DNA of 64,000 nt from Tubulanus polymorphus (taxonomy: Eukaryota; Animalia; Nemertea): NCBI RefSeq assembly GCF_964204645.1, contig NC_134032.1, forward strand, positions 8,296,275 through 8,360,274, written 5' to 3'. This document shows, piece after piece, positions 9,001 through 51,684 of the stretch. A program made the position numbers and the translations under genes. A model generated the notes under the pieces. It was not told where the DNA came from, made no database searches, and saw nothing but the letters and a program-made list of their open reading frames with translations. Position 1 is the stretch's first letter; each line of letters opens with the position of its first letter.

Positions 9001-10448
9001 TTAAGATGTTTCTGATTGCTTTTTTTGATTTAAGCTTGCAATGAAACAATTCGTTTGGTCATCAAAATCGTGCCATGGCATACAGTACTTACTAATGCAT
9101 CAGGGAAAAATGACCGGCCACAAATTCCGCAAGGTACGGTGACTGCTGCAGATCCACCTCCTACATAGAAATACAGAAAAAAGTTTTAAAAAAATAAATG
9201 TACATACACAGGGCACCTTCTCCACTCTCAAATGAATGTGGTGTGTAAAGTAAGTTTAACATTGATTGTCTATCTAGTTAGTATAATATAGGGCCAGTGA
9301 TTGTGTGAGTGTCATTTGACATTTCACAGTGGATGTTTTACCGTATACGGCAGCGTGTTTATTTCCGCTATTTTACCGTACATCGTCGCTGATTGGCTGA
9401 TTTACGCCGCGCATGCGCACAGAGGTGCGCGACTTAGAAAATTTGAGGAAATTGTGGTGAACAGAGTTAGAGAAAATAGAGCGGATAGAGCGAGACTCGA
9501 ACCCGATCCAGTAAATTGCCAGCGCAGCATCATCCCACCGAGCTCGCTGAAAACCACCCGAATGTCTTAACTAGGCCTATCTATAGTTCCTCAACTTACC
9601 CTAATCCTATCCCTATAGTAAAACGGACCCTAATCCTAGCCTAACCCTCTGGGTCATTAGACCCTAAACCCATCGGAACCCTAAACCTAAACCTACAGGG
9701 GCTTAACTAATAAAAGTAACAATAAAATCATGTTAGGCCTATTGGGTTTAGGCACAGGGGCTTGTCACAATTTGATGGAGGATGGATGGATGATACCATC
9801 CCTGCACCGCAGTCAGTATTCCAGGGAAAATCATCCATCCTCCACTCCATCAAATTGTGCCAAGCCCCTGTGCCTAAACCCAATAAAATGATTTTATTAT
9901 TACTTTATTAGTTAATACCATAATATATAGTAATGATGTACGGTAAAATAGCGAAAGTTAACACTAACAGTTCGCCGTACGGTTAAATATCAACTTCGGG
10001 TAAAAGTGCAGATCCGCACCTCTCGTGATTGACGCAATCTACTAAATATAACAGAAGTCAGAATCCAGGCTAAAATCTTTCTAGTGAAGATTTAAAATTA
10101 ACCAATGACAATCGTACTGAATTGCTGATGACATTTTGAATCTGAAACAATGATATTTAATGTAATTGATTGAACCGTTTACGCGGAGAGGTGCGGATCT
10201 GCACTTTTACCCAATTTCGTCTTCTTCGTTGACGACATTTTTGTCATTTTTTAAGTCACCCTATAAGAAATTGAAGACAAAAGTGACCCCGCCCACACAA
10301 TGTCACAAAGTTCTTTTGATCCTGTCCAGTCTCTATTTATTCAGGCCTAAAAGACTAAGTAAACGGGTGAAAGATATCGGCATGATGATACGCGATCTGA
10401 AATGAAAACAGTATAAAAACACCAACCATCATCGTCGTAGTCCGCCAT
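1..10448 (-). CDS. ZC2HC1A: Zinc finger C2HC domain-containing protein 1A (3' end probably off-window)
   Basis: GT-AG, phase-consistent exons: 10448-10427, 9160-9093, 8406-8278, 5230-5092, 4209-4061, 3947-3869, 3182-3108, 2500-2412, 1805-1657, then an acceptor at 13/12. Translation MADYDDDG..VPCGICGRSFFPDALRRHEPIC..RKVFDSGKQR..NWRAKHEDFINAIRSAK..LPPPPKPSINPDYVQCMYCNRRFNETAAERHITFC matches the two C2HC fingers and linker of the ZC2HC1A family. The C-terminal finger is not seen in the window. Confidence 0.93.
669..819. mobile_element. Tc1/pogo-type MITE
   Basis: TA|CAGTGGAACCTCGTT...AACGAGGTTCAACTG|TA terminal inverted repeats with TA flanks. Confidence 0.75.
4715..4950 (-). mobile_element. 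tRNA-derived SINE with a conserved central domain
   Basis: Minus strand shows a B-box-like GTTCGAACC, then CAGCAAGGCACTTATCC and GACCCAGGAGTAAGTGGGTA, ending in a TAA-type tail. Confidence 0.55.
5866..6278. mobile_element. PIF/Harbinger-type MITE
   Basis: TIRs AGCCTAGCGTACATCGAC / GTCGATGTACGCTAGGCT, with TAA on both sides (5863-5865 and 6279-6281). Confidence 0.8.
6854..7688. mobile_element. MITE with about 270-bp inverted arms
   Basis: 6854-about 7120 is the reverse complement of about 7420-7688 (AATACGGGAT.../...ATCCCGTATT). This explains the mirror ORFs 6852-7073 and 7457-7702. Confidence 0.85.
9704..9914. repeat. Near-perfect palindrome centred on a small CAGGGGC-ended (hAT-like) MITE
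   Basis: CAGGGGCTTGTCACAATTTGATGGAG..CTCCATCAAATTGTGCCAAGCCCCTG (9756-9870), with inverted flanks extending about 50 bp on each side. Confidence 0.75.
9998..10212. mobile_element. MITE with GGG...CCC termini
   Basis: TIRs GGGTAAAAGTGCAGATCCGCACCTCTC / GAGAGGTGCGGATCTGCACTTTTACCC. No clear target-site duplication. Confidence 0.75.
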
Positions 10449-10460
10449 GTTGTTTAACCT

Positions 10461-10475
10461 GTTTGCAGTAGCAAC
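10461..10475. promoter_or_regulatory. RFX X-box-like site just upstream of the ZC2HC1A ATG
   Basis: GTTTGCAGTAGCAAC, 13 bp upstream of the ATG. Confidence 0.5.
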
Positions 10476-11646
10476 GACTCTGATCGAGGGTTCAAGTCCC
10501 GACACGACACAGCTTCAGACTGAGTCCCATTCCGCGTTTTATCAACAATATACACGTTTGAATCCTCTCTTCAACTCGAAGTTTTTATCTTTTTACCCAA
10601 CTTTGCTCTATCTTTCTCCTTTTATCTTATGTTGTACTACATTGTGGCTTGTCTTGCTTTTTGGTAATTAGACCGCCGGGTGGTCGGCGTTATGAGATGT
10701 TGAAAATTAAAAATTAAAAAATGTCCAAATCCGGATTTTTAGGTTAGCGCGATCGTCTTCAAACGTATTGCATCTAACACGTAGCTGGACAATTTGGTTC
10801 TTCGATAATAAATGTCATTTTTAGGTAACTTCTACTAGGCCTATCTCTATCCGTTATATTTGTTATCACCGAATTCTGTTGGTATTTAAAAGTTTTAATA
10901 GGCTGGTTAATGGCTTGTCTGTCTTTTTTCCATGATTGTTCTACGAACGTTTCAAATGACAAAAACCGATACTTCTCCGGTAGTGCTGCCACCTAGCGTC
11001 TGAGAAGTAAAGTAAAAAACCCATTGTTGGCCATTACCCACTGCTCAAATCGTGCCCGTTTGGTGATTAAATGAACATAATAAATGAAATGGGGGTGCAT
11101 GTAGCAATTAATCATGTCAAAATGACCTTTCACTTTACTGTCTAGAAATGAGAATTATGAACAATTTGATCGATCTCCACACTCCAGTAGGCAGTAGTAC
11201 AACAACGTTGTTGACGTTCGCTCCATTTACGGCAACTCTTGTTTACATTGGGTTACATTTAAGGTGAATGTCACTAACACACTGCTGTACATCACTAAAT
11301 GCGCCACCGACACCGTAGTCCTTCACGCACGCGCATAGTGAACGGCGTAACCAACCGGGGCCACCACAGCGTCAGCGGCGGAATTTACGTCCCTCTGTAA
11401 CTGGAGCCAGTTCGTAATTTGAAAAGGGCAGATTCGTAGGATTCTGGTGGCACTTCAAAATGGGGCTTTTTCTGTCCCATATCAGTGCCTGTGCGGGTTC
11501 ATTTTGCGTCTTTAAAATTGTCTTAAAACGACATACTTTTGAATTCGGGAGGCACATTCAAATTTTGAAAATCGGCCCTTGCTGAAAACAAGGATATCTA
11601 GTTGAGGTTGTGAAAATAATTTGTATTTTTCTACAGTTTGTGAAAG

Positions 11647-13750
11647 ATGGTAGTATTTGAAGGCGTCGGCGTGCAGGTGCATTTACAAGAAAACCTGATC
11701 AGACGCTACATAGAGGAACATCTTGAGTGGTTGGACGAGTTCATCGCTGGAGCCGATGACCAAACGTGGAGCAGATGGATTTCGATACGAAATCAAACCG
11801 GTTAGTTAAATGCTTTAAAATCGAAACCCGCTCGCCGATTTTAACGCGAATTTGCATCATTTTCGAAAGATGAAATCTGCTAGTTTGTAGAAGGAATCTC
11901 GACTACTGCCGAAATAGATGATTCAATCAGGTGTCCTGGGCATGCAGGGTACTATTTATTTTGGCAATAGAGGATTCCACTCGCGACAAGTGAAGATCCA
12001 CCCGTCACTTATGCAAAAGGACACCATTTCATATGGTATTGATAGAGGATCCTCACGTGCTGCGATTGAAGCGGTGTGGCCACTGCCCAGAAAAATCAGG
12101 GAATTTTACCAAAAACCTTGAAAACCCTTGAAAGTCTGGGAATTTGGAAAATTCTATTGACCATGTGTTTCTTTAGCATGCGATGCATTGAAAAATGGAT
12201 GATTTATTATTATCATTATACAAAATTTGTATAGCGCCTTATTCCAAAGAGGCTCTAGAGCGCTTTACACAAAATAACAAAGACGCGGTAATACATCCTA
12301 CAAAACATATAAAACATCTACATGGAAAATTCAGTCGAAATGTCTGGTGAAAAGTTAAGTTTTAAGAAGAGTTTTAAAACGATGTAGTGATTCAACAGAT
12401 CTGATGGCACTGGGTAGAGCATTCCATGAATTGTAACATTTTAAACCTACTGTCTGTCACACCTGCTCTCCGTGCGACGTTTTGGTCCGTAATTTCGTTA
12501 ATAATCCGTTTATCTACCTTTATTACGCATCAATTTGTTCAGTGAGGACTTTGCATTCAGAAATAAACAACAATTTTTACTAATTGTTTTTGTTTTCATT
12601 TATGAGCGATAGTTTACTCAGCATACGCTCGCGTAATGCTGAAAATTCAGCTCCGCGGGCGCTCGCAAATGTTACAGTGACGTAATCACCTGCTCATTAG
12701 CATATCAAAATACAGTAGGTGGCGCCACGTGATGGGTCATAAAAGCCATTTTTCGGCATTACGCGAGTGTATGGTAGGTAAAACTATCGCTGATTTATGA
12801 AAACACAAACAAATCTATGCCAGTTCATCATTTATTTCTGAATGCAAATTCCTTACTGAACTTATTGATGCATAATATTTGGAGATAAACCGATTATTAA
12901 CGAAATTACGGACCGAAATGTCGCACAGAGAGCAGGTGACAGACAATAGAAGTCTCTCTGAATCGACTCAGGGAATTTCTATAGGCCCAATCACAAAAAA
13001 AATCGGGAAAAACTAAGGGAATTTATAAAATGGATGTAAAAAGGCCACCCTGTAAGGGCCCACCAGGTGTCAGCGCGCTAATATGATAGGACGCAATAGA
13101 TGTGAGGTTGTTAAAATGAGGTTTCACTGCACCGAGTTTTATTCGTTTGTTTATATTTATTTCAGTTAATCTGACGGCTCAATGGCAGACGGGTAACCGT
13201 GACGACGATCCGCAGACGGCGACCACGCGGCAAATTCCCTGTTCTTCGAATCCCGCGCGAAAGCGCCGCCTCGAACTTTTGAGTCGTCGTTGTCAAGCGG
13301 CCGCGCGCAACTGGAAACGCCGTCGGGCTCTCACCGCGCCCGCCGTGCACCAACAAGCGCCGACAGACTACGACGTCGATTGCTCGGGCGACCTACCGGG
13401 GGCGTCGGACAATTCGAGTCATTGGAAATTAAAGCGTTCCCCGTCGGACGCCGAAGATTGCGACGACGAAAACGTCGATTCCGGTTCATTGACCTTGACC
13501 CCGGCTACTACGTCGGTGGGCGGAAATTTACCGACGACGGCGGTCGTAATCAAAACGGAGCCCCCCGGCGGCGAGGGGGAGGATCACGCTGGCGATTTTA
13601 TCGACGAAATGTTTTATTCGGATAACGCTAATTTGCGGATCGCCGATCCAAGCGATTCGGATTTCACCACGGCAGAGCAGAATTCATTCCCTAGTACGAG
13701 TACAGGTGGCGCCACTGTCTCATTGAATTACAGTCAAAACACATCACCGG
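11647..13750 (+). CDS. Shared 5' exons of an unnamed multi-isoform nuclear protein gene
   Basis: Exon 11637-11800 (ATG 11647; MVVFEGVGVQVHLQENLIRRYIEEHLEWLDEFIAGADDQTWSRWISIRNQT; donor GTTAGT, phase 1) joins in frame to exon 13166-13750 (acceptor TTTCAG; donor GTAAGA, phase 1). The second exon is a CpG-rich acidic, disordered linker with basic clusters RKRRL and KRRR and a SUMO-consensus motif IKTE. Confidence 0.8.
12205..12427 (-). mobile_element. L2/CR1-group LINE 3' end fragment
   Basis: The minus strand encodes WNALPSAIRSVESLHRFKTLLKT, followed by GCGCTATACAAAT and an (AAT)n tail. Confidence 0.75.
12450..12946. mobile_element. TA-flanked MITE with about 200-bp TIRs
   Basis: TA|CTGTCTGTCACACCTGCTCTCCGTGCGACG...CGCACAGAGAGCAGGTGACAGACAA|TA. 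Confidence 0.85.
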
Positions 13751-15205
13751 GTAAGAACAAAACATTTTATACATCTATCGCTATTTCACAAATTCATCTT
13801 AAAAACTGGTATTGAATGTTACCTCAAGTGCAGTAGATCGATTAAGATACCGAACTCCAGTTCTAGATCGACCCCTAAATTCGGGCGCGGATCCCCAGGG
13901 GATCTTTTGGGGCCTTATAGAAGACCTTCAAATGTTTTGATTTTTTTGTTGCGGTCAATGGCCTGGTTTTATAGACTGGAATCAACTTTAACCCACGGGT
14001 TAAATCTATTGAAAATGAATTAAGTTAGCCCCCGGGTTAAAGGTAATACCAGTCTATAAAACCAGCCCCGTAGCTCTTATAGACTGGTATTAACATTTAG
14101 CCAGGGGTTAGGCCTAACTCAATTGAAAATGAATTGAGTAAGCCCCCGGGTAAAAGTTGATACCGGTACCAGTCTATACTGGTAACCTTGAATTTAAATT
14201 AATTAATGTTTGGTTGATTTAGGAAGAGAATTCTACAGTAATTGGGATATGAAAGAAATGCGGGCCCCTATTTTGAAATTTTAAATTTTCTCCTTTGAAA
14301 CTCCTTAGGCTTATATGCAGGGAACTTCATATCCAGGGGTGACTGATCTGTAGGGACCTAGGATTATAAGATCCTATACGGTTCAAATGTGCTCCTCTAC
14401 CTAGCAATGTTCCTGCAATCCCTGACCCCTATTGTTTAACAATCTTTATGTGTATGCATTTTCATTATAGATTTGTATTAGCCTAATTTAATTGTTTTCT
14501 AGCCTTCTACTTGGGTATGTTGCTTAAAATTGGGGAAAATTATCGTGAAGGATGAACGTTTCGGAGTTCGCTCATCTGACCCCTTAACGTTATTGGTTTC
14601 AGCTGAAATAGAAGAAAGTGTTTTTTTTTCAATCATTCAATGTGCCCTTTATTTCAACGCAGCACAAAACCTTTCTAAAGTTGGCCCTGGCCTGGAACAG
14701 CTCCTGAAATCCAAAATAGTTCATTTTTAATAACTTAAAAAAATTATGTCTTCACGTATGCTGTTTGCTGTTCAGTGAAGTTCTGAACACATATTCACTC
14801 TGGACAATCACTTATGGAGTGCGCCTTGATGAAAGCTTGGTGTTCGTAGTTCATTTCTGATGTCTTGGGACTGTCTTGGGGTGAAGTCTATACCTGTGAA
14901 GAGTGGACAATTACTTTTTGAAAGTGTCCTGATAGAATGCCTGTCTGGCGTTTGTAGTCCATTGTTCATCGAAAGGGCCTTAGATGAAGTTGTGAACACC
15001 TTTTGAAGTCTGGATGATCAGTTTTCGTAGCAATAGTAGTCAATACGTCCAATTAGAACGTCGCGCGCATAGTTGTGAAGATTGATACCTAAAATTTCTG
15101 AAATGGTGACCATACCAATACCATATTTGGAAATTTCTAGTTACCAGATTATGATATTTTTTATTGATTTTATGCGCTAAAAAAATGAATTCAGTATTCT
15201 CCTAG

Positions 15206-15495
15206 GCGAGTCGCGCTTGTCGAGAATTCGGTGAAACAATTTTGTTTTCGAATTCGAGTTTTTTCATTCCGCGAGTAATTTGCGACGACTGTGACGAAGA
15301 AACCGCTTTCATCTCGTGGAAACGAACAGTTCCTGACACGCGGTAAGTGCGCGCTCTAATTTGACTTCTGATCTTTCGAGAAAGAAACTTATCAAAAAGA
15401 AATTATATCGATATATCGTTTAAGAATTTTGAACCTACGATGGCTTGAGATTTTGAACCCGGAGAAGAATTTGGAAACGATTCTGAAAGTGGTAT
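15206..15495 (+). pseudogene. Decayed paralogous copy of variable module B
   Basis: The patch is CpG-rich. 15445-15493 (TTGAGATTTTGAACCCGGAGAAGAATT..ACGATTCTGAAAGTGGT) nearly duplicates 17244-17293. ATTVTKKP..FLTRG echoes STTAVLRKRP..TLTRA of exon 16009. In-frame stops are present and the copy is truncated by a MITE arm at 15495. Confidence 0.6.
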
Positions 15496-15672
15496 ATGCT
15501 AGGTTAACTATCGCTGATAGATGAAAACACAAACAAATCTATGCCAGTTCATGATTTATTTCTGAATGCAAATTCCTTACTGAACAAATTGATGCATGAT
15601 ATTTGCAGATAAACCGATTATAAACGAAATTACGGACCAAAACGTCGCACGGAGAGCAACTGTGACAGACAG
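15495..15672. mobile_element. Right arm only of the 12450-12946 MITE family
   Basis: Close match to 12770-12946, ending GTGACAGACAG|TA. Confidence 0.8.
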
Positions 15673-16008
15673 TAATTTCTATCAGGCGTACTGATGATGG
15701 CTGATAGTATTTAGCCGAAGCGTTGCTCGAAATACATATATTTTTACTAGAACTTCTCTCTCGTTATTCATCTCACACGCATATCGCGTATCGTCTCGAC
15801 TCTTCGATAAATTGGAACGTTTAAAGCTAGAAATTTCTCGGGGAATCTCACTCGGGGAATCTTTTGTGGTCACGTGGAAAAATCAGGGAAATCTCAGGGA
15901 ATTTTAAAGGGCGTTAAGTGGCCACTATGGGTTGATAAGTTAATCGATTATTGAATTTTCGCGTAAATTTCGCCGCATTAATCGTCCGTGATTTCGATGA
16001 AATTTCAG

Positions 16009-17491
16009 GTTCGACGACGGCTGTGCTTCGAAAACGACCGAAAAACCGAGACAAAATCAAAAGAACGTTGACGCGAGCCGTCGTCTGCCTGGCCGAGACG
16101 GACGCGCTGTTGATACCGGATCGAGATGAACTAGCGCGGCTACTCGCGTCCGGGCTCGGCTTGCGAAAAATTACGTTCAACGCAAACGGATCGAAGCAGG
16201 ATCTATCGGATAAACTCTACGAGTAAGTTAGCGATTTATGGTCCCGTTCCATAAACTCCCCCTACGGTTGCCTTCGTAAAGACCCCTACGAAATCAAGTT
16301 CCATAAACGCTTACGGTGAAGATGACGGCTTCCATACATTTCCCCTGTGACATCGTCAAATTCCAGAAAAGATGGCTACCTTCATACCCCTACGATCCTT
16401 TTTTTCGAAAAAAGTTTCGACAAACATCATCTTTGTCCTTCTTTTTAACCCAAATCCATCCTTTTGATAAAAAAGTCCTTCCAAATTTGATTTTTTATGT
16501 ATTTTCGCATGCAATTTTGTCGCGAATTGTACTGTTGAAGTATTCTATTACTCGGGCCTGGTAATTCAATTAAATCATTAAGATTGAATAATTACCCTGA
16601 AATGTATGACCGGTCTACACGACTAGTATTCCAGCAAAGTCATTGCGAAAATGCTCCCTTATGGACCCTTTTACTGGAAAGAACTTCTTTCTGAGTCAAA
16701 AAGTCCCTCCTTTTGGGTCTAGAATTGTGGAAAAAGTCCTTCTTAGTACTTCTTTTTTCCCTGGCCTTACCACTGGAAACCCTGCCTAGATAGTTCCTGA
16801 AAGCATGGATCCATATATCCCCCTACGATAGGCCTATGATTGAATTACCGATGAGAGAGCCTTCCAGTATAGATGGCTCCTTCTATAAACCCCCCATGAT
16901 CACCCAGAGCTGCCAAATGTTCCTGATTTTCAGTGTTTATTACAATTTTATAACAAGAAATACCAATTTGATTTGTTCGATACTACAGAAATATGAAAGA
17001 TGTTACTGATGGTCTTATTGTTGAATGATGGAACATTTTCTTTCATATTCCAATGAAATGTTACTCAAAGAAATTAAACTTGTTACTAATAGCGCTTTTT
17101 AGAGGTTGGCAGCCCCGATATCCGTAGCGGAAACGATAGCTGCCTCCGTAAATTCTCCCCCTATGTCTATTATTGAAGAAATACTTTGCAAATGCGGATT
17201 GAATTTTTCAGGGAATACCCAAAGTTAAAACGTGGCGGTGGTTTTGAGATTTTGAACCCGGAGAAGAATTCGCGAACGATTCTGAAAGTGGTCCACGTCG
17301 GCGCCATCGAGTGTAGCCGACTTGGCGAGGTATCGGCGTCGAAATTCTACGTCCGTCCGCTGCAGGTCGACCTGTCTCGCGTCGTCGACGTGCAGACTCC
17401 GCACTCAGGTGGCACGATCGCGTGCGTTCGCTGCCGGCGCCGATTCAAAATCAACGACATCAGAAGTCATCGCGAGAAGTGCTTCGTTTGA
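16009..17491 (+). CDS. Variable 3' module B: uncharacterised globular domain plus a C2HC finger (isoform about 410 aa)
   Basis: Exon 16009-16222 (phase 1 in, phase 2 out, donor GTAAGT) joins 17212-17491 (TGA). Sequence: VVCLA..IPDRDELARLLASGLGLRKITF..YPKLKRGGGFEIL..FYVRPLQVDL..CVRC..HREKC. Shared exons plus module total 1233 nt, a whole number of codons. Confidence 0.8.
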
Positions 17492-18361
17492 AAAACGTAC
17501 GACGCGCCGACAGCTACGTGTTCCTTCGAAGAAGCGGTGCAAATGTTAGTATTTTTTCGATTTTGTCGTTATTTCGTAGTCGCTGTGTTCTCCGTATGCC
17601 GTCAGTTCAACGGTACAACTCCTTGATTCCTTGAAAACTCCTTCTAAACCAAAAATATTTTTCTAGGTACTTGTCGAGAACATAAGTGAGAATAATTGAG
17701 AATTGAGTTCTAACGAACAACGTAATTACATTTACTTACACTACACTTTACGGATTGACATAGGCTCTGCTCGCGAGAGCTGTAAAACGACCACTGCCGT
17801 ACCCATACCATACAGTCGATCATGCGCACTAATCGTGGTGCGAAAACCTTGGCGGGAAAATATTCCTGACAGTACTTGAATATCCTTGAATTTAAGCAAA
17901 ATGCCCAAAAGTCCTTAAAAACGCCTTGAATTTTGAGAAATTGGCAATTTTTTGGCTCTAGGCCTAGTTATTATATACACAGATTCCATCGATTGAATGG
18001 TTTACTGATAAAAACAGTACCACTGTGGCTGCTGAAATAGCAAGGCTTTCAATGCTCCACAAAATTCAGCTCGATTTCGGTGTAATCTTCTATTTTTCAC
18101 ATTACCTCAATATATTTCAAAGCGATTATCAACATTGATAGAATATTGACATCCGCTCTTGTGGGGGCAGCTGTTAATTTTTTAAGGGATAACTGATTTT
18201 CAGAGGGGTGGATGTAAAAATGTTGCGGAGAACACTGCGTGAAAATTATGGTTCTCTCTGAGGAAGAATTTTCAGCATAGCTAAGCAAAATTATGTTAAG
18301 TTACTAATGACGATCTTACTCTAATGATTCATTAAAGTAACTGATGACAGCCTTTCATTAA

Positions 18362-18661
18362 CCCTTTCAGCGCTGACTAATTTATACCCGAAAGTGCTGA
18401 AGATGATACATTGTATGAGAAAAATCTTCCAAATGCCACTCCAGTGTGTTGAATAATGGGCATGTCGCTACAGTGCGTCTACACCATCCTGCGGTGTATC
18501 ATTAGTTACTAATATTTTACAATGTTTGACAGGTTATAGTCATTCAATAGGGATAGAAACTAATAACTAATAGGCCTATATGAATACACTACGATGCAGT
18601 GTACTAGCTAAGTCCATCACCAATTTATACATCGTACTGCGGTGTAGATGCACTGGAAGGG
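18362..18661. mobile_element. piggyBac-type MITE (degenerate copy)
   Basis: TTAA|CCCTTTCAGCGC...GCACTGGAAGGG|TAA; same family as 25486-25768. Confidence 0.7.
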
Positions 18662-19880
18662 TAATGTTATGATTTATGATGACCTTCTCACGCTTGATGA
18701 CTTCAATGATATGATTTGATTGTAGTTACATTTGTGAAACAGGGCCGTATTGTTTGAAATGTTATTTATCACTTACCCGATCACTTACTTTACTTTGTCT
18801 ACACGAACTGTTGCCTATTTGGATGTCTGGCGAAAACTCAAAATGTACATTCGATTAATTTCAAAATAATTGTTAAATAAATGCGTTATCATTAAAAATT
18901 GTTGTTACGTTTAATTCATTCGCCAGGAGCCACAGTGAATAACCAGTGCTTGTTGCTCCTGACAGTCTTTTGGGCAGTTTATCAAGACAATCAGGACAAA
19001 TATCAGTCTTAAGTAGAGGGGAACTTACAGGCGTAACATGACTGAAATATGGATCTGCTTGAAAATTGTGAAAATAATATGAAAAGGTTAAAGAAGCATG
19101 TGAAAAATGCGAAGAAAAATATCCATCCCATCTACCGTGAGCTGTATGCAGCAAAAGCTGTGTAAAAGTTAACGAAATTTCACTTTTTTCCGTCCAAGTC
19201 GCGATCAGTAAATTCTTGTTATTGTACCCTGACGTGTAAAAAACGTGAAAAATCTGGAGCGAGGAAATTCATGTGAAAGATCCGGTGGTAGTTTGTTGTT
19301 AAAAAAGCAATATTGAGGATATGAAAAGGTGAAAATTTCAGAGTTCATCAGTCTCCCTTGACTGTCTTCATCAGTCTTGGAAAATGTTTCTTTAGGTGCT
19401 TGAAGCTCCCTTAATTTGAGCAAAATGTCAGGAACCCCTTCAATTTTTTTGAAAAAAGCAAAATAGAAATTTTCGTCTAGTTTATAGTTGTACAGTAGAC
19501 TATGCCTAAATCGATTAAGTTGGGATTCGTTTTTACCCAATTAGGCAGTGACCAAATTAGAAAACGAGTTAAGGTAGTGTAAAGGATGAACATTTGCTCA
19601 CAGAACTACAGAAAATGGTTTATACATGTACATATGAAAGTCATACAGACACTCCTTATATCCAGGAATGACTGTTCTGTAGGGACCCTGTCCTACCTTT
19701 GACGTCGGTTCGTATGTATGTGTAATTCTATAGTAGGATGATGAAATAATTGGATGGAAACGACTCAAAATTGAATGAATATTCAAGTATTCATTACGAG
19801 GAACAGCCCCGTTTGTTGCGCGCGTGCACGCCTGTCGGTGTAACTATGGTAACCTTCGGTGTTTGTTTGCCTATTTTCAG

Positions 19881-20296
19881 ACGGCGGTCGACGAATCGCA
19901 GCGGACGACGACAACGACGAGGTTACCGTGGTTACCGAGCATCGGCAGCACGCGACGCGTCGAGAAACGACGTATGACGACCCCCGTATATACGGTCTAC
20001 CGGCGCGACATTTCCAGCAGAGACAAGTCGCGCTCGATCGGATGATGAATTCGACGGTTCGAACCGCAGCGGTCGCTTCTCCCGGTACCGCGGCGTCAAT
20101 GCAGCACGTCTGCCATATTTGCGATAAGCATTTCAGTTACAAGTCGAATTTGTGGCGGCACATGAGTTTACACCCGGGAGTGTCGCCGTTCTCGTGTCGA
20201 ATTTGTCAGAAGAGCTATCGCAACGCGAACAACCTGAGAACTCACATGTTGAAAACGCACAGCGACCAGATGGATAGACTCGTGAGTTTATTCTGA
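19881..20296 (+). CDS. Variable 3' module C: two C2H2 zinc fingers (isoform about 384 aa)
   Basis: Phase-1 acceptor TTTTCAG at 19880. Encodes CHICDKHFSYKSNLWRHMSLH and CRICQKSYRNANNLRTHMLKTH. Shared exons plus module total 1155 nt. Confidence 0.85.
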
Positions 20297-21135
20297 GAAC
20301 CCGCGTGAAACTCACATGTTGAAAACTCACAGCGACCAGACGGATAGACTCGTGAGTTTATTCTGAGACCCCGCGTGAAACCCACATGTTGAAAACTCAC
20401 AGCGACCAGACGGATAGACTCGTGAGTTTATTCTGAGACCCCGCGTGAAACCCACATGTTGAAAACTCACAGCGACCAGACGGATAGACTCGTGAGTTTA
20501 TTCTGAGACCCCGCGTGAAACCCACATGTTGAAAACTCACAGCGACCAGAAGGATAGACTCGTGAGTTTATTCTGAGACCCCGCGTGAAACCCACATGTT
20601 GAAAACTCACAGCGACCAGAAGGATAGACTCGTGAGTTTATTCTGAGACCCCGCGTGAAACCCACATGTTGAAAACTCACAGCGACCAGACGGATAGACT
20701 CGTGAGTTTATTCTGAGAACCCGCGTGAAACTCACATGTTGAAAACGCACAGCGACCAGATGGATAGACTCGTGAGTTTATTCTGAGAACCCGCGTGAAA
20801 CTCACATGTTGAAAACTCACAGCGACCAGACGGATAGACTCGTGAGTTTATTCTGAGACCCCGCGTGAAACTCACATGTTGAAAACTCACAGCGACCAGA
20901 TGGATAGACTCGTGAGTTCATTCTGAGAACCCGCATGAAACTCACATGTTGAAAACGCACAGCGACCAGATGGATAGACTCGTGAGTTTATTCTGAGAAC
21001 CCGCGTGAAACTCACATGTTGAAAACTCACAGCGACCAGATGGATAGACTCGTGAGTTTATTCTGAGAACACACGTGAAACTCACATGTTGAAAACGCAC
21101 AGCGAATTGATGGATAAACTCATGAGTTTATTCTC
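20240..21135 (+). repeat. 60-bp tandem repeat, about 15 copies, with degenerate copies to about 21430
   Basis: Unit CTCACATGTTGAAAACNCACAGCGACCAGANGGATAGACTCGTGAGTTTATTCTGAGANCCCGCGTGAAA. The first unit is the coding end of module C. Confidence 0.97.
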
Positions 21136-22242
21136 ACAAGTTGAAATAACTCGCATGTTATAACTCAGGACCCAGTTCCACAGTTGTGAATTAGAGTTAA
21201 CTCTGAGTTGAAATTAGTTCATTTTCAATGTTTTAACTCAGAGTAAAATTTTAACTCACGACTGTGGAACTGGGTCCGGATGTTTATAACTCACATGTTG
21301 AAAGCTCGCAGTGACCAGATGGATAAAACTCTTGAGTTCATTCCGAGAATTCGCGTGTTGAAAACTCACACTGACCCGATGGATAAACTCGCAATTTAAT
21401 TCTGAGAACTCACATGTTGAAAGCTTGCAGTGAGTTTAAACTCGAGACTCTTATTATGTCAAAAGCTCACATTCACAATTGCTGATCAACTCATGCTGAG
21501 CGGTCACTACTCTCAATGGGACTGCCTACCATACTTCAAGGCCTCAGAATTTCTGGTTAAAAAAATCCATAGATAACTGAATGAATTTCAGACTGCACGA
21601 TTAGTCAAGATATGCACTAATAATCTTTACAATTTAATATGTCAATAACTTTAATGGTCATATTTTTTATTGATTTAGAATTTGATTTCTCATCATTATA
21701 CATTGTACATTATTTTTGATTACGACAATTGAGATTTGTGTAAGATTAAACATTGATTTCAATGCTAACTAAAAATAAACTATAAAGGCTGAAGATCATC
21801 AGTTTAAATTCTGATTATTTTAACCTTGAATCTTATGATTTCAATAGAATGTTTATGTTTGAAATATGTTCATGCTTGTTCTTGGTGAACCAAACCTTGA
21901 AGTAACAGGGTACCCCACAGCGCTACTGTCAGGGGTGGATTCAGGGGCATGTTGTGACCATGTCGACCAATAAAAAGGGCATATATTCTTAATCTAGGGC
22001 GGAAAGGCATATCAGCAAAATTTTTGAAATTTTCTATCATTTTAGAGCTTTCTGAGCATCTCTGAGAGGCATTTAGTCAAGAAACATTATATATTTAGGG
22101 AAAATATCTATTGTGTATCTCAGGTGGGCACTTAAAAATTCTGACTGTGTCGGGCGATACGGTCGACACGGCCTAAATCTGCCCCTGACTGTGGCAATTG
22201 AGGATTCCACGTATGGCAGGCGAAGATCCGCAAGGTTCACTA

Positions 22243-22405
22243 GGGGATCATTCATTTATTACGTACGCCCAAAATTTGAATTTTTCAACCCCCCTCCCCT
22301 CTACTCAAAATCGACCATTTTTTCATATACATTAAGCATTACAGTACGCAATTGCACTGACCCCTCCCTCCTCTCCTAATGCGTACGTAATAAATGAATG
22401 ACCCC
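22243..22405. mobile_element. Harbinger-like MITE
   Basis: GGGGATCATTCATTTATTACGTACGC / GCGTACGTAATAAATGAATGACCCC. Confidence 0.75.
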
Positions 22406-22927
22406 TAGTACATGTAGATAGTTGGTCTTCCACCAATTTCTTCTACAAATCTAAATGAACTTTTCTCTTAAATGAATCAATTTAATTTATGAAAACTATA
22501 CCGAGTAGAAGACCACACTTCACTGTATATCGCACCCCAAGAGCGGCTTCGACTACAGACATCAAATTGACAGCTGCTTTTACAGGGTCCCTACGACCCC
22601 TCGATTCTTTATCAAAAACTTCATAGAGGAAATGCTTTTAAATGGTGCTTGAAACTCCTTTAATTCAAACAAAATGCTCGAAACTCCTTCATTTTTGAGA
22701 AATAGGCAAGTGGAAATTTCATTTATTTTGCTTACAAAGCCACCCAGATAATACTAGCTAGATAAACAGTACCGGTTTAGGTGGAGTCTAAAGTAATTGG
22801 GACTAGTAATGTCGAAATTTGAAATTATTCCCTTATATCCAGGAATGACTGACCTATTTTAATAATAATGTTACCGTGCGTTGAATAGATGAATGTAAAA
22901 CTTTGTTTTTCGTTTTATTTTTTGCAG

Positions 22928-23849
22928 CGTACACGACGACATGGAATATGAATCGAAGGCTCGTACGAGGGTCGAGTTTATACGATAAAGTCATCAAAGC
23001 GGTGTGCGGTATACCGGGTCCGGCCGCGTTACCCAGGACCATACAACGTCGCATCAAGGGCTCTAAAATTCAGGAAATTCGAGGTAAATTGAAACTGTTT
23101 TTGTTTTAGGGTTTCGTTCGCCAAAGTAAGTCAAATAAAAGTAGCCACCATGTTCTGCTATTGTTATTCCAAATCAGGGAGGGATTTAGGGGAGGTTGCC
23201 CTTTTTGTGAAATCAAAGATCATTAAAACCTGTTTAAATTTGTTACTTATCCTTTCAAAAATTGCATTTTTCAAACATATTTCTAAGAATATCTAATAGC
23301 ATTGGTGGGACTCCTCTAGTAGCCTATGAAATGGCTGCTTTATCTGAAAAATGCCTTTTTCTTCTGGACCCCAGTCTTCCAAATTCACTTTGTCTATGGT
23401 CAGCCCTAGTCAGTAGGCCTAACCTGTCTGGTTGGATAATTTCACAAACCACAGTACATTGGTTTAAGCCCATCCGATTATTAAGCTTACCACCAACGAT
23501 GCCTGCAAATTCATTACCACCAATGATAGGTAGGCCTACTAACTATGGGGTCCGCCGCTGCAAATATGATATTGTCTATTTTACAGACGAACTTTGTCGT
23601 TTGGGTCGGCACGGTTTCGGCAAATTGAGCACGGTCGAAATCGGCGGGTCGCTGCGATCGTTATTCTTCAAAACTCCGCCCACCGCTGTGAATCCTGCCG
23701 CATTGAATACGTATTTGGTGAAGGCGCGGATGTCGCTTTTCGAGTACGAACTGTGTTTCAACGACGCCAATCAGACGGAACGATCCATCAAAGAAGCGTG
23801 TTTACTTCATCACCCGCAGAAACAATTTCTCGCTAAATTTTGGCGGTGA
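22928..23849 (+). CDS. Variable 3' module D: winged-helix-like domain (isoform about 385 aa)
   Basis: Exons 22928-23083 (phase 1-1) and 23587-23849 (TGA). Sequence: LYDKVIKAVCGIPGP..PRTIQRRI..KIQEIRDELCRLGRHGFGKLSTV..LFFKTPP..MSLFEYELCF. Shared exons plus module total 1158 nt. AATAAA follows at 24027. The winged-helix call is inferred from the residue pattern only. Confidence 0.78.
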
Positions 23850-24568
23850 CGAGATCGAGTGCCTTTTACGCACATGCCCCGACTCAGTTTCACAAATTAA
23901 GTTAATCGTCGATTCAGGATCACTGTATTATGTTTTACTGAGCTTGATGGATGGGTTTTATTCAAATTTTTGGTTTTTCGCTATTGTTGCGTCTGGAAAG
24001 ATCTTTTTCTGCGAATAATTTATTATAATAAAATATATCTAATTAACTATTGTATTATTGACAATGAAATATATAATGATTGTTTTTAATATATTATTTG
24101 GTATATAATATGCTTGTTTAATTTCTGTTCATCGGAGAAAATTGTACTGGTCCGGTCCGCCGGCCCGCCGTGGTGGCCCACTATTAATAGGTTTTGATGT
24201 ACCAACATCCGTTCATAGTACGACTGAGATTAAGATTAGTTCACATCTGGCAACGGTTGGTAACATAAGCGTTGGAATATCTATGAAATATGTTCACTTT
24301 AATAAATATCTCTCAAGTTTCACGCTACTGTGTTATCTTCAAAAAATCAAAAATTTCCTTTTGTTAAATCTGTGCATGTCCATATATATCCTATGTTTAT
24401 TCGTACTGTTATGAAAATGCATTTTTCTTTTCTTCGTTTATAATATTTGTATTGTTCTTGTATTTATTACTGTATTTAACCAATAAATGATTTGCTTGTT
24501 TTTTTTATATTAAGGTGTAATAAAGTAATTTTGAATTTGATCCAAATTGGCTGGCAGTTTTTTCTTTG

Positions 24569-24673: not shown

Positions 24674-35376
<10,703 letters not shown>

Positions 35377-36907: not shown

Positions 36908-38163
36908 TACTAGGGGTCCAGGGACACCATGCCCACTTGGGAAGTGGTTTCAAATGCTTAACAATTTCAACATTCAACGCCCCCTGGTGACCATTTACAA
37001 AAACCAATGACCTTGAAACTCACCACAATCATAGAACATGTCAACAGCTACGATTTTGTAATTGATTGTGATAACAAAATATGCCTCGTACCAATTTAAT
37101 ATGGAAATACTAAGTCATTCTACTATTCAACGCCCCCTGGTGACCATATTCAAAACCCAATGACCTTGAAACTCACCACAATCATAGAACATGTCATGAA
37201 CTACAACTTTGCAATTGATCATGGTAACAAAATATGCCTAGGTACCAATATAATAAGGAAATACTAAGTTATTCTACTATTCAACGCCCCCTGGTGACCA
37301 TATAGAAAAACTTATGTCCTTAAAACTCGCAACAATCATAGATGATGTCATGAGCTACAACTTTCCAATTGATTGTGGTTACAAAATATGCATAGGTACG
37401 AATATAATAAAGAAATGCTAAGATATTGTATTATTCAACGCCCCCCTGGTGGCCATATACGAAATCCAATTACCTTGAAACTCACCACAATTATAGAACA
37501 CGTTATGAGCTACAACTTTCTAATTGATTGTGGTATCAAAATACGCTTAGGTATCAATATAATGTGGAAAAACTTTTTCCCACTTACGAATGAGTACTGG
37601 TGACACCAAGATGGCCGCCAATTGCGTCATAATTGGCTGATGAAAAATACCTGTCTCAGGTATAAAACATCCCTTTCCAAAGAATGCCCATCACAAATTG
37701 TAATGAGAAATGGCAAACCAGTAGGAAGCTACAGGACTCAGAATTCGGGCCAAAATTAACATTTTTGGGCACTAAAAAGGTCATAGGACGGCCATCTTGA
37801 GTCCGACCGACCCAATTTTTGTTATGTTGATGGGCCCTGGAGGGATTCACATATATCCGAAAGATCAAGGTAAATTGATCAAAGCGTCTTCAAAATTTCC
37901 CTCAAAAAGTTCAAAAATGTGTAAAAAGTGCTGATTTTGACGAACAACAATCATCAATATTATGGCTGCCAGTCGGCCATCTTGATTCTGACAGGGCCAG
38001 TTTTTGGGCTGAAGATGTGTCTAGGGTAGATACATGTGTAACCCAAATATCAAGACGTTACCTTGAAACGTCTTCAAAACTTCCCAAAATAACTGGATTC
38101 CGTCTACGGACGGACGACGGACGAAAAGTGAACGCAACTAAAGTCCCAAGTGGGCAAAAAAAA
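36908..38163 (-). mobile_element. Non-autonomous Helentron-like element (HINE/DINE-type), copy 1
   Basis: T-run start, subterminal inverted repeat GCCCACTTGGGA / TCCCAAGTGGGC, (CGTC)n microsatellite, four internal repeats of about 154 bp, and a short 3' hairpin GTCC-CT-GGAC. Confidence 0.8.
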
Positions 38164-46700: not shown

Positions 46701-49700
46701 ATGCGCAAGAACATTGTGGCGATATGATTTTTTTTTCTAATTCGAAAATTTCGAGTTAATAAGTAAAAAGAAAATTATATGGCTACAATGCTCTTCCGTA
46801 CTAACTAACAGGTTACTTAAAATATCCCCTCAACATCCCTCACAGCATAACCATACGGGTAAATAATATAACCCTTTCCTCTCTCAGTCACTAACAGGTA
46901 GGCCTAACTGAATATCCCCTCATCACCCCTCAGAGCAACAGCATGCAGATAAATGATATCACCCTCCCCTCTCTCGATCACAAACAGGAAACTAAAAAAT
47001 ATCCCCTCAATTCGCCTCACAGCGACAACATACACGTAAATAATGTCATCCTCTCCTACCTCACAAACAGTAACTAAGTAACCCTTCAACTCCCCTTACA
47101 GAGACCCGATAGGGACCCTGTTATCCTGTTATATAAGAAATTGTCACACGCAAATTTTCTAAAATCTTGAAAATTCTACAATATCATTCTCATCGATGTT
47201 TTTGATTCTCGTCCGCAACAGTTGAAGTTGCTGAGGAGAGGGATTTTATCGACGACAACGACGTAGATTTCGAGCCAGAGGATGAACGACGTCCGTCGAA
47301 GGCATCCGTGTTGAAGTTGAAAAAAGAGCCATTCTTCGGGCCACCGCCGAACCGGCCGCTACAGGCGCTTTCGTGCAGGCGTTGTAGTAAAGAGTTCTAC
47401 GATAAAGCGGAATTAGCCCTGCACATACAGGAACATTTGAAGGTTCGTTATAGAATTTCTTTTATGAAAAGTAGAATCAGAATTTGAACAATTGATCTTC
47501 GATATTAAATTCATTCATCAATTAAATTCTTTTTATGGCTAAAAAGATCATCACAAAAGTTGATTGTAATCGGAAGTTTCAGTCAAGAATAATTTATCTG
47601 AATTATTTCAGGTAATTAAATTACATGTAAATCTGTAGCAGTTTTCACGAAACTTGATCAACTTTCATGACGATTAAAAACCTACATCATTGTCCATCCT
47701 CACTTAAAACAAATTTTATCGTAATCATCTAGTGTCATGATTAGTGACTAATCATGACACTAGATGATTATGATAAAATTTGGTTTCACCAAAGGGTTTT
47801 ATACGAAGGGGTTGACAAAATCTTTTTAGAAATTCTAATTCAGATGTTAAAGAAATTACTTGGTTGTACATGTAATATATTTGATATCAGCAGTCTCACA
47901 CCAATACACCATTTAAACAAATTAGCTGTTAAATCATCGTTATAGCTGATTTGCTGCGTTACTAGACATTCTAGGGTTAATAACTTTTTAGAAATTTTAG
48001 AAGTCAGGTATGAAAAAAAAACATTCTTTTTTCTCCACACAGGTGAACTCTTGCGAAATTTGCGAAATGTCGTTCTTCCAATTGGACGCCTTGAAACGAC
48101 ACATGGCGATGTTCCACCGTAACCCGATGACCGGCGATTCGTCGACGTCGAAAATCAAAAAAGAGAAAGCCTCCGACTACGGCGACGAGCACGAGACGGC
48201 GGGCGGTCGCGCCAGTAAGAAGCGTCGCGTAAGCCCTCCGCCGCGCAACCACCGCTACTCGACGCGCGGCATCCGTTTAGACATGGCCAAATTGACAGGA
48301 ATCAAACGCGAACCGCAAAGCAGCGACGAGGAGTATGTGCCAGAGAAACGCGAGCCGAAAAAATCGCCCACCGTAAAACGTGGCAGAGGCCGGCCGCGTA
48401 AAGTGGTGACACCCGCGGCCGAGGTAAAAATACGCAAACCGCGAGCGTTCGAAGAGACAAACGTCGATGCCGACGTATTAACGTCGATCGCGGGAGCCAA
48501 CGTCGAAGAATGTCAGGAATCGGTCAAACGAGTAGTCGACGCGGTTGTCAACGCCGTCGAGTTGTCGACGAACGTCGCCGGGGAGGCCGACGGGCTGAGA
48601 GACGAGAATATCAACGACGATGATTTCGACGATCGTGCTGAACGCGTGGACGACGAGGCAAGACCGGACGACGTCGACGTCGAGGGGGATGAGGACGATG
48701 AGGCAGAAGAGGGAGAAGATGAAAGCGGGATCGCGGTGCCGGAGATGAACGATGAGGAACTAGCGAGCTACGAACGCGAGGAAGACGGGTTGGTGTTGGA
48801 TCGCGAGCAGTTGAAAATCGAATCGAACGACCGCGAAAAATGTTACATCGTGTACACGTTCATGGCTCGAGTGGACGACCTAGAGCAGCAGCCAACGCAA
48901 TCCGGTATCGAGCAAACACAATCATCAACTTTGGGTCAGACTGATGAGTCCGGTATAGGGCAGATGGAATCTGGTCTCGAGCAGATGGAATGCAGTTTAG
49001 AGCAGACACAAACTGATATCGGGCAAACAGAGTCTAATTTAGAGCAAATGGAAACCAATATAGGGCAGACTGAGTCCAGTTTGGAGCAGATTGAATCCGG
49101 TCTAGAGCAGATCGAATCCGTTTTGCAGCCAACGGCATCGAGCGTCGTCGAACGAATCGAACCTGGTGCGCAAATCTACGAGTGCCGGGCATGCGGGCGT
49201 CTCTTCAGCCGCGATGTGTTTGCTGAGAAGCACGTCAGCGTCACGCACGGCTTCGTCTGTTCGTACTGCACGAAGTCGTTTCGCAAAGACACCACGTACC
49301 AGGTGCACCGCTGCAAACAAATGGTCGAAGGCGTCAAACCAGATGCCGATGGTGTCTACCACTGTCCGGAATGCGATAAGAAATTTGCAACCGTCGACAC
49401 GCTGCACCCGCATTTGTTCGGGCACCGGCGCAAGCTGCAGTGCCGCCTGTGCAAGCGGTCGTTCATGCGTAAGGAAACGTACCGGAAGCACGCGTGTCCG
49501 GCGAAACGGCCGGCGGCGAAAACGTACCGCTGCGACATCTGCAACATGACGTTCGCGACGGCGAAATATCTGTTCCGGCACCTGGCTGCGCACACGGAAC
49601 GTTTCAAGTGTATCAAGTGCAGCCATTCGTTTTCGCGCAAGCAGAGTTTGCTGTCGCACATCAATAAATGCAATCCGGCTCAGTTCCGCGCAATGGGCAT

Positions 49701-51684
49701 CTCGGCGTTTCCGTGCCGCATTTGTAACCGCGTGTTCAGCGAGGCGGTCAAACTCGACAACCACATGGTCATGCACGAAGGCAAGTACAAGTGCGACGTT
49801 TGCTTCAAGAGCTTCACGAACATGAATACGCTGAAGCTGCACATTTGCTCGTCGTCGAAAACCGAGGACAAGTCGCTGGTGATCGACGCGGTCGTGACGC
49901 CGACGGCCGAGTTGCCGATCGTCAAATGCGACGGCGGTTACGCGTGCCGCCTGTGCGACAAACACTTCGCCACCGAGAGACTGCACGAGAAACACATGAC
50001 GGCGCACACTGAGAAACTGGTCTGTGACTTCTGCGACACGGCGTTCCAGCGAAGACTCGAGTTGAACTCGCACGTGGTCGTGTGTCGCGCGACCGGCGCA
50101 CTGAAGGAGACCGGACGCGTCAGCTGCGAAGTCTGCCCGCTCGTGTTCATCGACTTGGCCGAGTACAAACGCCATGTCGACGTGGCGCACACGCAGCCGT
50201 TCCGCTGCGACACGTGCGAACGCCACTTCCGCAGTTTGCTGCGCAAAATCGAGCATGAGCGCGTCTGCTTGAAAATGACGAACGACCAACTGGAGAACTT
50301 AGTCTGCCAGTCGTGCGGCAAAATATTCAAAGACGCGCAGAGCCTTGCGCGGCACATGATCGTGCATCAACGGCCGCAGCACCACTGCGATGACTGCGGC
50401 AAGGACTTCTACCGACGCGACTACTTCAACCAGCACACGTGTCGGCGCGCGGATGGCACCGTCGTGCAACTGCAGCGCGGCAAGTACGACGGCGCAGAGC
50501 AGAACACGACGCCGCACATTTGCCATTTGTGCGGCAATTCGTACATCAGCTATGGCAACTTGAACAAGCACTTGATACGGCACGGCGAAAAAACGGTCCC
50601 TTGTCCCGTCTGCGAGAAAATGTTCCACCTGGAATCCGCGATGAAGGAGCACCTGAAACACGTGCACTCGAACGACAAGTGCGCGCAGTGCCCGCACTGC
50701 GGCAAGATGATGAAGTCGAAGAACTCGCTCGGCGCGCACATCAAGCAATTCCACCGCGACAACGTCGTGTTGTATCCGTGTCAACACTGCGGCAAGGCGT
50801 TCCGACAGCGCGGCAACATGCTCAAACACATGCTCATGCACTCGTCGCACAAGACGTACGCCTGTCCGTACTGCGATAAATCGTTCAAGTACCCGGAACA
50901 GTTGCACAAGCACAAACTCGAACACGAACAAGGCCGACAGTTCAACTGCGCTGACTGCAATCGCTGGTTCGTCAAAGAGTACGAGTTGCGCAAGCACAAC
51001 GCCGTCTTTCACAGCGGCGTTATGTACACGTGCGAATTCTGCCCGACCGATTGTCGGCACATACACACGCTGAAACGGCACATCCGACGTCGGCATCCCG
51101 ATCGTTTGTACTTGCTGAACGACGCGTCGTACTTACGCAGTTTACAACGAATCGTCTCGGAAGGTGCCGTCGCGGCCGCGGCTGAAGACGATGATAACGA
51201 CGATGTCGAGAACATCGTCGCCAAGCAACCGAAACAGACGATTCAAACGATTCGCATTTTGCAGCCCGGTTCCGGCTCAGACCGCCTGCAAGAGATGGAA
51301 ATCGAGCTGACCGGCATCGACCAGCCGCCGCAGCAGCAGCACGTCGAACCTATGCAGGAGGTGACTATCGAAGAAATCCAAAACGACGCCGACCTTCAGC
51401 AGGTGCAGCGTTTGGTCGGCGAGGCGTCGGTGGCGCGCGAAGGCAACGAGGCGGCGCAGACGGTCAGCATCGAGTTCATGTCGCACGAGGCGGCCGAGGT
51501 TCTTCAGAGTTTGTCGACGACCAGCGGCGACGTGCAGACAGTCACGCTGGCCGATTTGACGCGTTTGACCGCTGGTCAAGAGGGCGCGACGCACATCATA
51601 CACCAGGACGGCGAGTCGCAGGAGTATATACTTGTACCGCTGATAAACGCCACCGATGAACAACACGCTATTACTACTGGTTGA
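40775..51684 (+). CDS. PRDM15: PR/SET domain zinc finger protein, PRDM10/15 clade (1499 aa, 23 fingers, AT-hook)
   Basis: Exons 40775-40808, 41495-41576, 42455-42617, 43321-43460, 45692-45795, 46549-46662, 47222-47442, 48043-51684 sum to 4500 nt in frame. Features: zinc knuckle CDICGGDHYTEQCPELG; PR domain RARSTLPNNLE..TRFGP..CNWMVLVR..QNLMAFQ..ELRVWYAPHYA; AT-hook KRGRGRPRK. Orthology to PRDM15 versus PRDM10 is not resolved. Confidence 0.88.
43823..44256 (+). mobile_element. Internally deleted hAT-like transposon in a PRDM intron
   Basis: TIRs CAGAGATGCTAG / CTAGCATCTCTG. It retains a transposase N-terminal zinc-finger fragment KFNWHWL..AYCVVCKDQVKYGSGGKKDILRH..SARHK. Confidence 0.75.
45918..46220. 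mobile_element. hAT-like MITE
   Basis: CAGGGCCGGCG / CGCCGGCCCTG termini; the target-site duplication is poor. Confidence 0.6.

Follow-up and report, generated by a model that had tools for sequence, protein, structure and literature searches.

LOC141910074 of the nemertean Tubulanus polymorphus is probably one gene of a Tubulanus-restricted family, in which a constant two-exon head is spliced to alternative last exons entered in phase 1, and in this gene two tails (A and C) have been added to the family type of zinc-finger tail (B). The constant exons connect to the alternative 3' exons in one single splice phase, and for two of the three joins RefSeq has an identical isoform, which bears out the architecture proposed in the first-pass annotation (one constant head without BTB domain, followed by alternative phase-1 last exons). 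All positions given here refer to the window, i.e. the complete stretch of 64,000 nucleotides that was analyzed, and all features are located on its forward strand; the annotated span of the gene corresponds to 11647-23849. Recomputing the exon coordinates and phases gave the same values throughout, including the two shared exons and their phase-1 donor at 13750.

The constant part is encoded by exon 1 (11647..11800), which holds the 51-aa head domain of the family and ends in a phase-1 donor, and exon 2 (13166..13750), which ends in the shared phase-1 donor (CCG G|GTAAG). Together they encode 246 aa. An acceptor at 11637 directly precedes exon 1 and points to a non-coding first exon upstream of 11647. 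The core of the head is acidic and aromatic (WLDE..DD.TW..W), while exon 2 contains basic, NLS-like KRR clusters that are common to the paralogues, a low-complexity acidic/Ser-Thr linker and a SUMO consensus (IKTE). Pfam searches with exon 1, exon 2, residues 1-110 and the family alignment returned no domain, and a PDB profile search with the head family was empty; with a head of just 51 aa, the constant part can indeed be described as free of BTB. Likewise, the head, tail A and tail C gave no match in Pfam, PHROGs or PDB sequence searches. From the basic clusters and the SUMO consensus we infer that the head acts in the nucleus as a small module for interactions or effector functions, possibly an analogue of KRAB, ZAD or BTB in the form of a small uncharacterized effector domain.

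The first exon has relatives elsewhere in the genome, as the first-pass annotation had suggested to look for. A phmmer search of the whole library with the head retrieved 10 paralogous proteins at E-values of 1e-5 to 8e-4, all of which come from T. polymorphus and share one chromosome; identities are 44-48%, and 20 columns of the alignment are invariant. In addition, 14 more head copies were found within the fetched loci. No head was found outside Tubulanus among 1.84 billion representatives, and this also upholds the claim that the system arose independently of the insect genes. The paralogues include zinc-finger cassette genes at a distance of 2.4-3.3 Mb, namely LOC141910263 and a gene cluster situated around 11.4-11.65 Mb of OZ123233.1. 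An exon 1, a long exon 2 and a phase-1 donor recur in P0013, P0008, P0005, P0003, P0006 and P0011, and LOC141910263 carries at least six zinc-finger-pair tails in phase 1. One further candidate, P0012, was discarded since it represents a metagenomic repeat match. By these comparisons LOC141910074 does not stand alone but belongs, as an outlier and the most divergent member found, to a family that shares its two-exon head and its tails in phase 1. None of the literature searches run brought up a publication on this family.

Downstream of the shared donor all three acceptors are in phase 1, and each combination of the constant part with a tail contains a single, terminal stop. The whole-codon isoforms claimed initially could thus be reproduced from the exon coordinates, with lengths of 410 aa (tail A), 384 aa (tail B) and 385 aa (tail C). 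Residue for residue, the constant part with tail A equals the annotation model XP_074656889/890/891.1 (isoform X1) and the constant part with tail C equals XP_074656892.1 (isoform X2). That X1 comprises three accessions for one protein implies transcript variants differing outside the coding sequence; in the NCBI pipeline such variants are normally supported by RNA alignments. A protein combining head and tail B is absent from the protein collection, even though its 384 aa fall within the length range searched. The tails are CpG-rich coding modules, as described before, with an observed/expected ratio of 1.7-2.0 in their exons against 0.3-1.1 in the introns. None of them has an evident first exon of its own. 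In-frame stops immediately precede all three acceptors; methionine is lacking in tail A and occurs at residue 55 in tail B and at residue 8 in tail C. Given this lack of methionine and the upstream stops, tail A cannot be translated alone. The pyrimidine content of the acceptors rises from A to C (12/22, 16/22 and 18/22), as would be expected if the distal exons have to compete. The three AATAAA motifs listed in the first-pass annotation as following the tails are present (18876..18881, 21774..21779 and 24027..24032, the last one 177 nt past the stop of tail C) and are candidate poly(A) signals, those behind tails A and B being the first AATAAA encountered there, but they add little weight as an argument for polyadenylation: with one such motif per kb across the window, their occurrence is not above chance (P of 0.75, 0.78 and 0.16 for tails A, B and C, respectively).

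Tail B is a single exon (19881..20296) with two C2H2 fingers at about 20105-20173 and 20189-20260, found by the Pfam search, in agreement with the earlier description. The fingers are connected by a rare HPG linker, which is seen in only 2 of 72 linkers, namely those of tail B and of the first tail of LOC141910263. These two tails are also reciprocal best matches among the fetched loci (43% over 68 aa). Instead of being a newly captured module, as was first thought, tail B is on this comparison an inherited tail of the family type. Its last codons and stop have been amplified into a 70-bp tandem array (20239..21134; 12.8 copies, 96% match), which holds 12 GTGAGT donor-consensus motifs and thereby 12 of the 38 GT[AG]AGT motifs in the window.

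This array might have consequences for the output of tail B, and a lowered or silenced output is our speculation. It has been described (PMC4474610, PMC3826338 and PMC9074902) that U1 sites present in a terminal exon suppress the processing of the 3' end, and that 5' splice-site motifs lead to nuclear retention and decay. Consequently, a serious possibility is that the gene effectively has two isoforms: A and C are used, whereas B is a vestigial ancestral tail, being skipped or degraded as a consequence of the 12 donor motifs that the array introduced into this last exon; U1 bound there would prevent polyadenylation or retain the RNA in the nucleus. The lack of a head-plus-B protein on record fits such a course, as does the finding that splicing from 20281 to tail C results in a premature stop 7 codons into the first exon of C. 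On the other hand, the frame of tail B is intact over 137 codons, both fingers are complete, the CpG level is exon-like (1.76) and the acceptor is good, and the missing annotation could also reflect low expression or read alignment hindered by the repeat. The main architecture would remain unchanged, with one of the three junctions idle.

Tail A is divided over two exons. The first (16009..16222) runs from a phase-1 acceptor to a phase-2 donor and covers the N-terminal half of a domain with a probable beta-grasp fold (ubiquitin/PB1-like); the second (17212..17491) provides the remainder, a finger and the stop of the 410-aa isoform X1. The pattern search located the finger at 17423-17482, with the arrangement C-x2-C-x11-H-x3-C, which we take to be UBZ/Rad18-type spacing. 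It has no Pfam match; by its spacing it is assigned to the UBZ type, with putative ubiquitin binding. The Atlas structure neighbours of tail A are animal HECT, SAM-HECT and Neuralized-HECT clusters (TM 0.58-0.69) together with unnamed animal clusters (TM up to 0.73), and a fold search of the PDB gave weak beta-grasp matches (Z under 5). Hence the 'unknown domain with a C2HC finger' of the first-pass annotation keeps its finger, and its domain resembles by predicted structure the N-terminal domain of animal HECT ligases, probably a ubiquitin-like domain rather than a DNA-binding fold. An intronic copy of part of the second exon (49 nt at 15445..15493, 94% identical to 17244-17292) represents a local duplication or relic; a dispersed repeat was considered as well, but no further copy occurs in the window or the fetched loci. 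Alternative acceptors for this exon at 17103 and 17105 run into stops.

Tail C also consists of two exons: 22928..23083, with a phase-1 acceptor that has the highest pyrimidine content among the three and a phase-1 donor, encodes the first part of a probable winged helix, and 23587..23849 completes the 385-aa isoform X2 including its stop. An alternative donor of the first exon at 23125 gives a stop. Its Atlas neighbours are winged-helix families (feature score 0.84), in line with the winged-helix-like fold noted at first but at lead level only. The single-sequence AlphaFold models of tails A and C are of low confidence (pLDDT of 40 and 45), and the fold searches with these models stayed under a Z of 5, without a firm PDB match. 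Taken together, the earlier idea that alternative tails retarget DNA binding is only partly right, as not all tails appear to be of a DNA-binding type: it would hold for B with its two C2H2 fingers and perhaps for C, but apparently not for A with its HECT-associated, probably ubiquitin-like domain.

With respect to the origin of tails A and C, neither has a relative in the fetched paralogous loci, the homologue search with tail C found no sequence relative, and scans of viral and metagenome contigs with the second exon of each tail gave no match. The repeat scan detected only small intronic inverted repeats, none of which bracket tail A or C, and neither transposon ends nor a transposase around them; old insertions lose their element ends. 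On the basis of the Atlas neighbours, it is plausible that both tails were captured from transposon cargo genes (SAM-Ubl-HECT for A), the source of C perhaps being a DUF3987/MCM-like helicase. No publication on IS3EU elements that carry HECT turned up in the literature searches, and a sigma-70 promoter scan was set aside as not applicable to animal DNA. It might also be argued that the head donor merely splices at a low level into phase-compatible relics, with A and/or C being recent neutral transposon remnants. The failure to find an orthologous fusion or close sequence relative for either tail could be read this way, yet the same observation points to old, diverged sequence of which the frame was kept open. 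Moreover, in both A and C the frame is still intact across the two exons, the internal phases match and the tail ends in a stop of its own, the repeat scan shows no element around them, and A corresponds to the three transcript variants of X1. Such functionless exon trapping is therefore unlikely.

Upstream of tail A lies a CpG-rich, exon-like piece (15206..15342) with a TAG acceptor and a GTAAGT donor. It is open solely as phase 0 to 2, contains no ATG and has the wrong phase for tail A; when entered in phase 1 a stop follows after 9 codons. B and C could be separate small genes with their own promoters and the fused models annotation artefacts: this piece could be a non-coding first exon, both tails have internal methionines, and cassette tails of the paralogous loci are found split or merged in the annotation. 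We consider this very improbable, as tail A has no methionine, all three acceptors are in phase 1 and keep the frame of the head, two alternative RefSeq isoforms share that head, and a paralogue shows the same layout of a head plus phase-1 tails. Least probable of all is trans-splicing of tails from internal promoters (e.g. near 15200, where a CpG-rich stretch with a donor precedes A) to head transcripts, as occurs for all isoforms of mod(mdg4) and some of lola (PMC13490949), since all tails follow in colinear order on one strand, less than 10 kb from the donor, so that cis-splicing suffices.

Under the cis-spliced constant-head architecture favoured here, the single donor at 13750 would be joined to one of three acceptors, a choice coupled to cleavage and polyadenylation behind each tail. 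The ancestral gene would have consisted of the head and the zinc-finger pair of B. Tails A (ubiquitin-like domain and UBZ-type finger) and C (probable winged helix) would be later additions, gained when splicing reached foreign exons compatible with phase 1; these exons are most likely what is left of cargo genes of transposons. Given their differing folds, B (and perhaps C) would send the head to DNA and A would send it to ubiquitin- or PB1-type protein partners, with the head playing the part that BTB has in lola and KRAB in vertebrate fusions. A bolder version, which we put forward tentatively and regard as rather doubtful, is a lola-like splice-socket family that nemerteans built independently around a new effector domain, and of which this member uses captured cargo domains (the HECT-ligase ubiquitin-like domain with UBZ, and the helicase winged helix) as main isoforms while B is muted by the donor array. 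If true, one gene would switch between DNA-targeted and ubiquitin-targeted forms.

The constant-plus-variable design of transcription factors is known from the arthropod TTK-BTB genes, and a version without BTB in a spiralian indicates convergence. In addition, the variable slot can hold more than duplicated zinc fingers: an inherited tail is found beside two foreign folds within one 12-kb gene, which opens the gain of tails by exon capture, and the possible loss of an old one, to study in that gene. The results suggest that a design like that of fly lola also takes in unrelated, possibly transposon-derived domains, and the locus points to a small effector domain that can be tested.

Within its own family, LOC141910074 shares the 51-aa head, the basic region, the two constant exons and the phase-1 junctions and tails, but it is a long-branch outlier at least 2.4 Mb away from the others. 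It has a single zinc-finger tail where its relatives have many, and its annotated isoforms are those with the two tails foreign to the family. In Drosophila, the TTK-BTB genes lola, mod(mdg4), broad and fruitless likewise join constant 5' exons to one of several 3' exons with differing C-terminal domains. TTK-BTB is arthropod-specific; lola has about 20 isoforms, 17 of them with C2H2 fingers, and mod(mdg4) at least 30, mostly with FLYWCH (PMC11426971). A two-finger cassette such as tail B is also present in lola, whereas LOC141910074 lacks BTB, has a head found only in Tubulanus and carries three tails of three unrelated folds instead of a duplicated series, one of which is apparently not DNA-binding. 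In contrast to the situation described in PMC13490949, its tails are all colinear on one strand, with no sign of trans-splicing or opposite-strand exons. In the KRAB-transposase fusions of host and transposase genes (Cosby et al., bioRxiv 10.1101/2020.05.07.082677) a lineage-restricted effector similarly acquires new C-terminal domains when alternative splicing reaches foreign exons, and the gene retains its original zinc-finger tail; here, however, the candidate captured parts resemble domains of cargo genes rather than of transposases, the head is not KRAB and the transposon origin is a candidate one. Finally, tail A resembles the N-terminal domain of G2E3-like, SAM-HECT and Neuralized-HECT ligases by predicted structure, not by sequence alignment; unlike these ligases, LOC141910074 has no HECT or SAM and presents the ubiquitin-like part and the UBZ-spaced finger alone.

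A search with the frame of the second constant exon returned a single protein, isoform X2 of LOC141910074 from the ribbon worm Tubulanus polymorphus, and the gene lies on chromosome record OZ123233.1 at 8,307,921-8,320,123 (11647-23849 of the window). Two constant coding exons on the forward strand (11647-11800 and 13166-13750; 246 aa, ending in phase 1) precede three tails on the same strand: A (16009-16222 and 17212-17491), B (19881-20296) and C (22928-23083 and 23587-23849). Joined as claimed in the first-pass annotation, these exons exactly rebuild models of 410, 384 and 385 aa, respectively, constant part included. The proposed joins to A and C match RefSeq isoforms X1 (three accessions, one protein) and X2 with every residue identical, but head+B has no recorded isoform and was not returned in two protein searches whose length range included the 384-aa size. 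The junctions to A and C are based on RefSeq models; alternative RefSeq models are normally built on RNA alignments. Overall, the locus combines one donor and three in-phase acceptors with two annotated products; A and C are very probably genuine alternative isoforms, while use of B is only slightly favoured.

All three tails have in-frame stops immediately 5' of the acceptor, and tail A contains no methionine, so that A cannot form a stand-alone gene without an upstream coding exon. Upstream there is a single exon-like piece (15206-15342), which lacks an ATG and is in the wrong phase. An AATAAA does follow each tail, as reported earlier, but at one per kb the motif is no more frequent than expected by chance. 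The exon-like piece is CpG-rich with a strong donor in phase 2, the phase of the acceptor of the second exon of tail A, and is adjoined by a 49-nt copy of part of that exon (15445-15493); together they may be what is left of the donor gene or of a former second copy of tail A. Intron 1 contains a MITE-like inverted-repeat element (12448-12938), and intron 2 holds part of another copy (15506-15674).

Upstream, a zf-C2HC_2 (ZC2HC1-like) gene is oriented head-to-head with its start about 1.2 kb away, and 10448-11647 is probably a common bidirectional promoter region. An NYD-SP28 (DRC1-like) gene follows downstream at 24674; past it, an uninterrupted 1224-codon frame (48010-51684), apparently a gene of its own, encodes many C2H2 fingers and includes a 21-bp repeat region. 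The window also holds a 397-aa single-frame DHHC palmitoyltransferase (PF01529; 38592-39785, reverse strand), apparently intronless, and two related 154-bp tandem arrays (36972-37574 and 60584-61141) in apparently opposite orientations.

As previously claimed, the head is no BTB domain: it matched no entry in Pfam, PHROGs or PDB. A search of exon 1 against 1.84 billion representatives gave 10 genuine relatives besides the gene itself; every one is a T. polymorphus protein from the same chromosome, and seven have C2H2 fingers. The fetched loci hold 14 further head copies. Family proteins share a conserved acidic/aromatic head core, a basic region in exon 2 and an exon layout (a short exon 1, then a long exon 2 ending in a phase-1 donor). 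LOC141910074 belongs to this Tubulanus constant-head family on all three features tested, and forms the longest branch of a head tree that is otherwise without resolution. In the fetched stretch of the paralogue LOC141910263, at least six phase-1 two-finger tails are present. In locus L001 (18988-26799) the paralogue's alternative two-finger tails are run together in the annotation as a gene of their own (751 aa), apparently an artefact.

Tail B encodes two C2H2 fingers. Among the fetched loci, B and the first LOC141910263 tail are each other's best match (43% over 68 aa; 71-73 bits, against at most 59 for others), and only these two of 72 linkers read HPG; on both grounds we regard B as the inherited tail. 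A young 70-bp tandem array (20239-21134; 12.8 copies, 96% match), with degenerate copies to about 21440, starts within the second finger, indicating that it grew out of the last codons of B. Every unit carries GTGAGT, contributing 12 of the 38 such motifs in the window. Splicing from the first of these (20281) into tail C would meet a stop after seven codons, well 5' of the C intron. According to three papers (PMC4474610, PMC3826338, PMC9074902), U1 sites in a last exon suppress 3'-end processing or lead to nuclear retention; we hypothesize that the array's donor motifs could explain why only tail B is without an isoform.

Tail A has no match in Pfam. When its Atlas model is aligned, animal HECT, SAM-HECT and Neuralized-HECT proteins score TM 0.58-0.69 and unnamed animal clusters reach TM 0.73; a fold search with a weak model gave low-Z matches enriched in PB1 and beta-grasp domains. 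The C-terminal end reads C-x2-C-x11-H-x3-C, which is the UBZ spacing. We read A as a putative ubiquitin-like domain plus UBZ-type finger, apparently a protein-interaction tail rather than a DNA reader. For tail C no relative was found by sequence homologue search; in the Atlas it neighbours winged-helix families, both in its features (0.84) and in the structure of residues 255-332, making a winged helix a lead only. Of the folds claimed earlier, the C2H2 pair of B holds and the winged-helix-like domain of C stands as a lead; A is apparently not DNA-binding.

The paralogous loci contain no relative of A or of C. Derivation from transposon cargo is somewhat favoured for A, the likeliest source being transposons with SAM-(ubiquitin-like)-HECT ligases; for C it is a tentative idea, and transposons with DUF3987/MCM-like helicases are a less certain source. 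LOC141909522 (L003, 12588-14666), another family member, has an annotated tail without C2H2 array, in which a Cys/His-rich domain is followed up by an end of Myb-like type; the two resemble Crypton/SET-associated element proteins, and there is no Pfam match. In this gene, too, a foreign tail may have been captured.

In the mechanism that we propose, alternative last-exon choice coupled to polyadenylation would select among the tails. A small nuclear effector head would be carried to DNA by B, perhaps by C, and to ubiquitin/PB1-type partners by A; A and C would have been acquired via splicing into phase-compatible foreign exons. We consider this mechanism and history, taken as a whole, likely. 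The three-tail locus itself is a real feature, with a predicted B isoform and an inferred capture history. The constant-plus-variable design is already known from insects, where lola and mod(mdg4) have the same architecture (PMC11426971, PMC13490949); LOC141910074 is however no member of that group, as it lacks a BTB domain and TTK-BTB is arthropod-specific (PMC11426971). Its history may resemble KRAB-transposase capture (bioRxiv 10.1101/2020.05.07.082677), though the transposon source is putative here. What sets LOC141910074 apart is that an inherited fold stands beside two foreign ones, and that one of them is apparently not DNA-binding.
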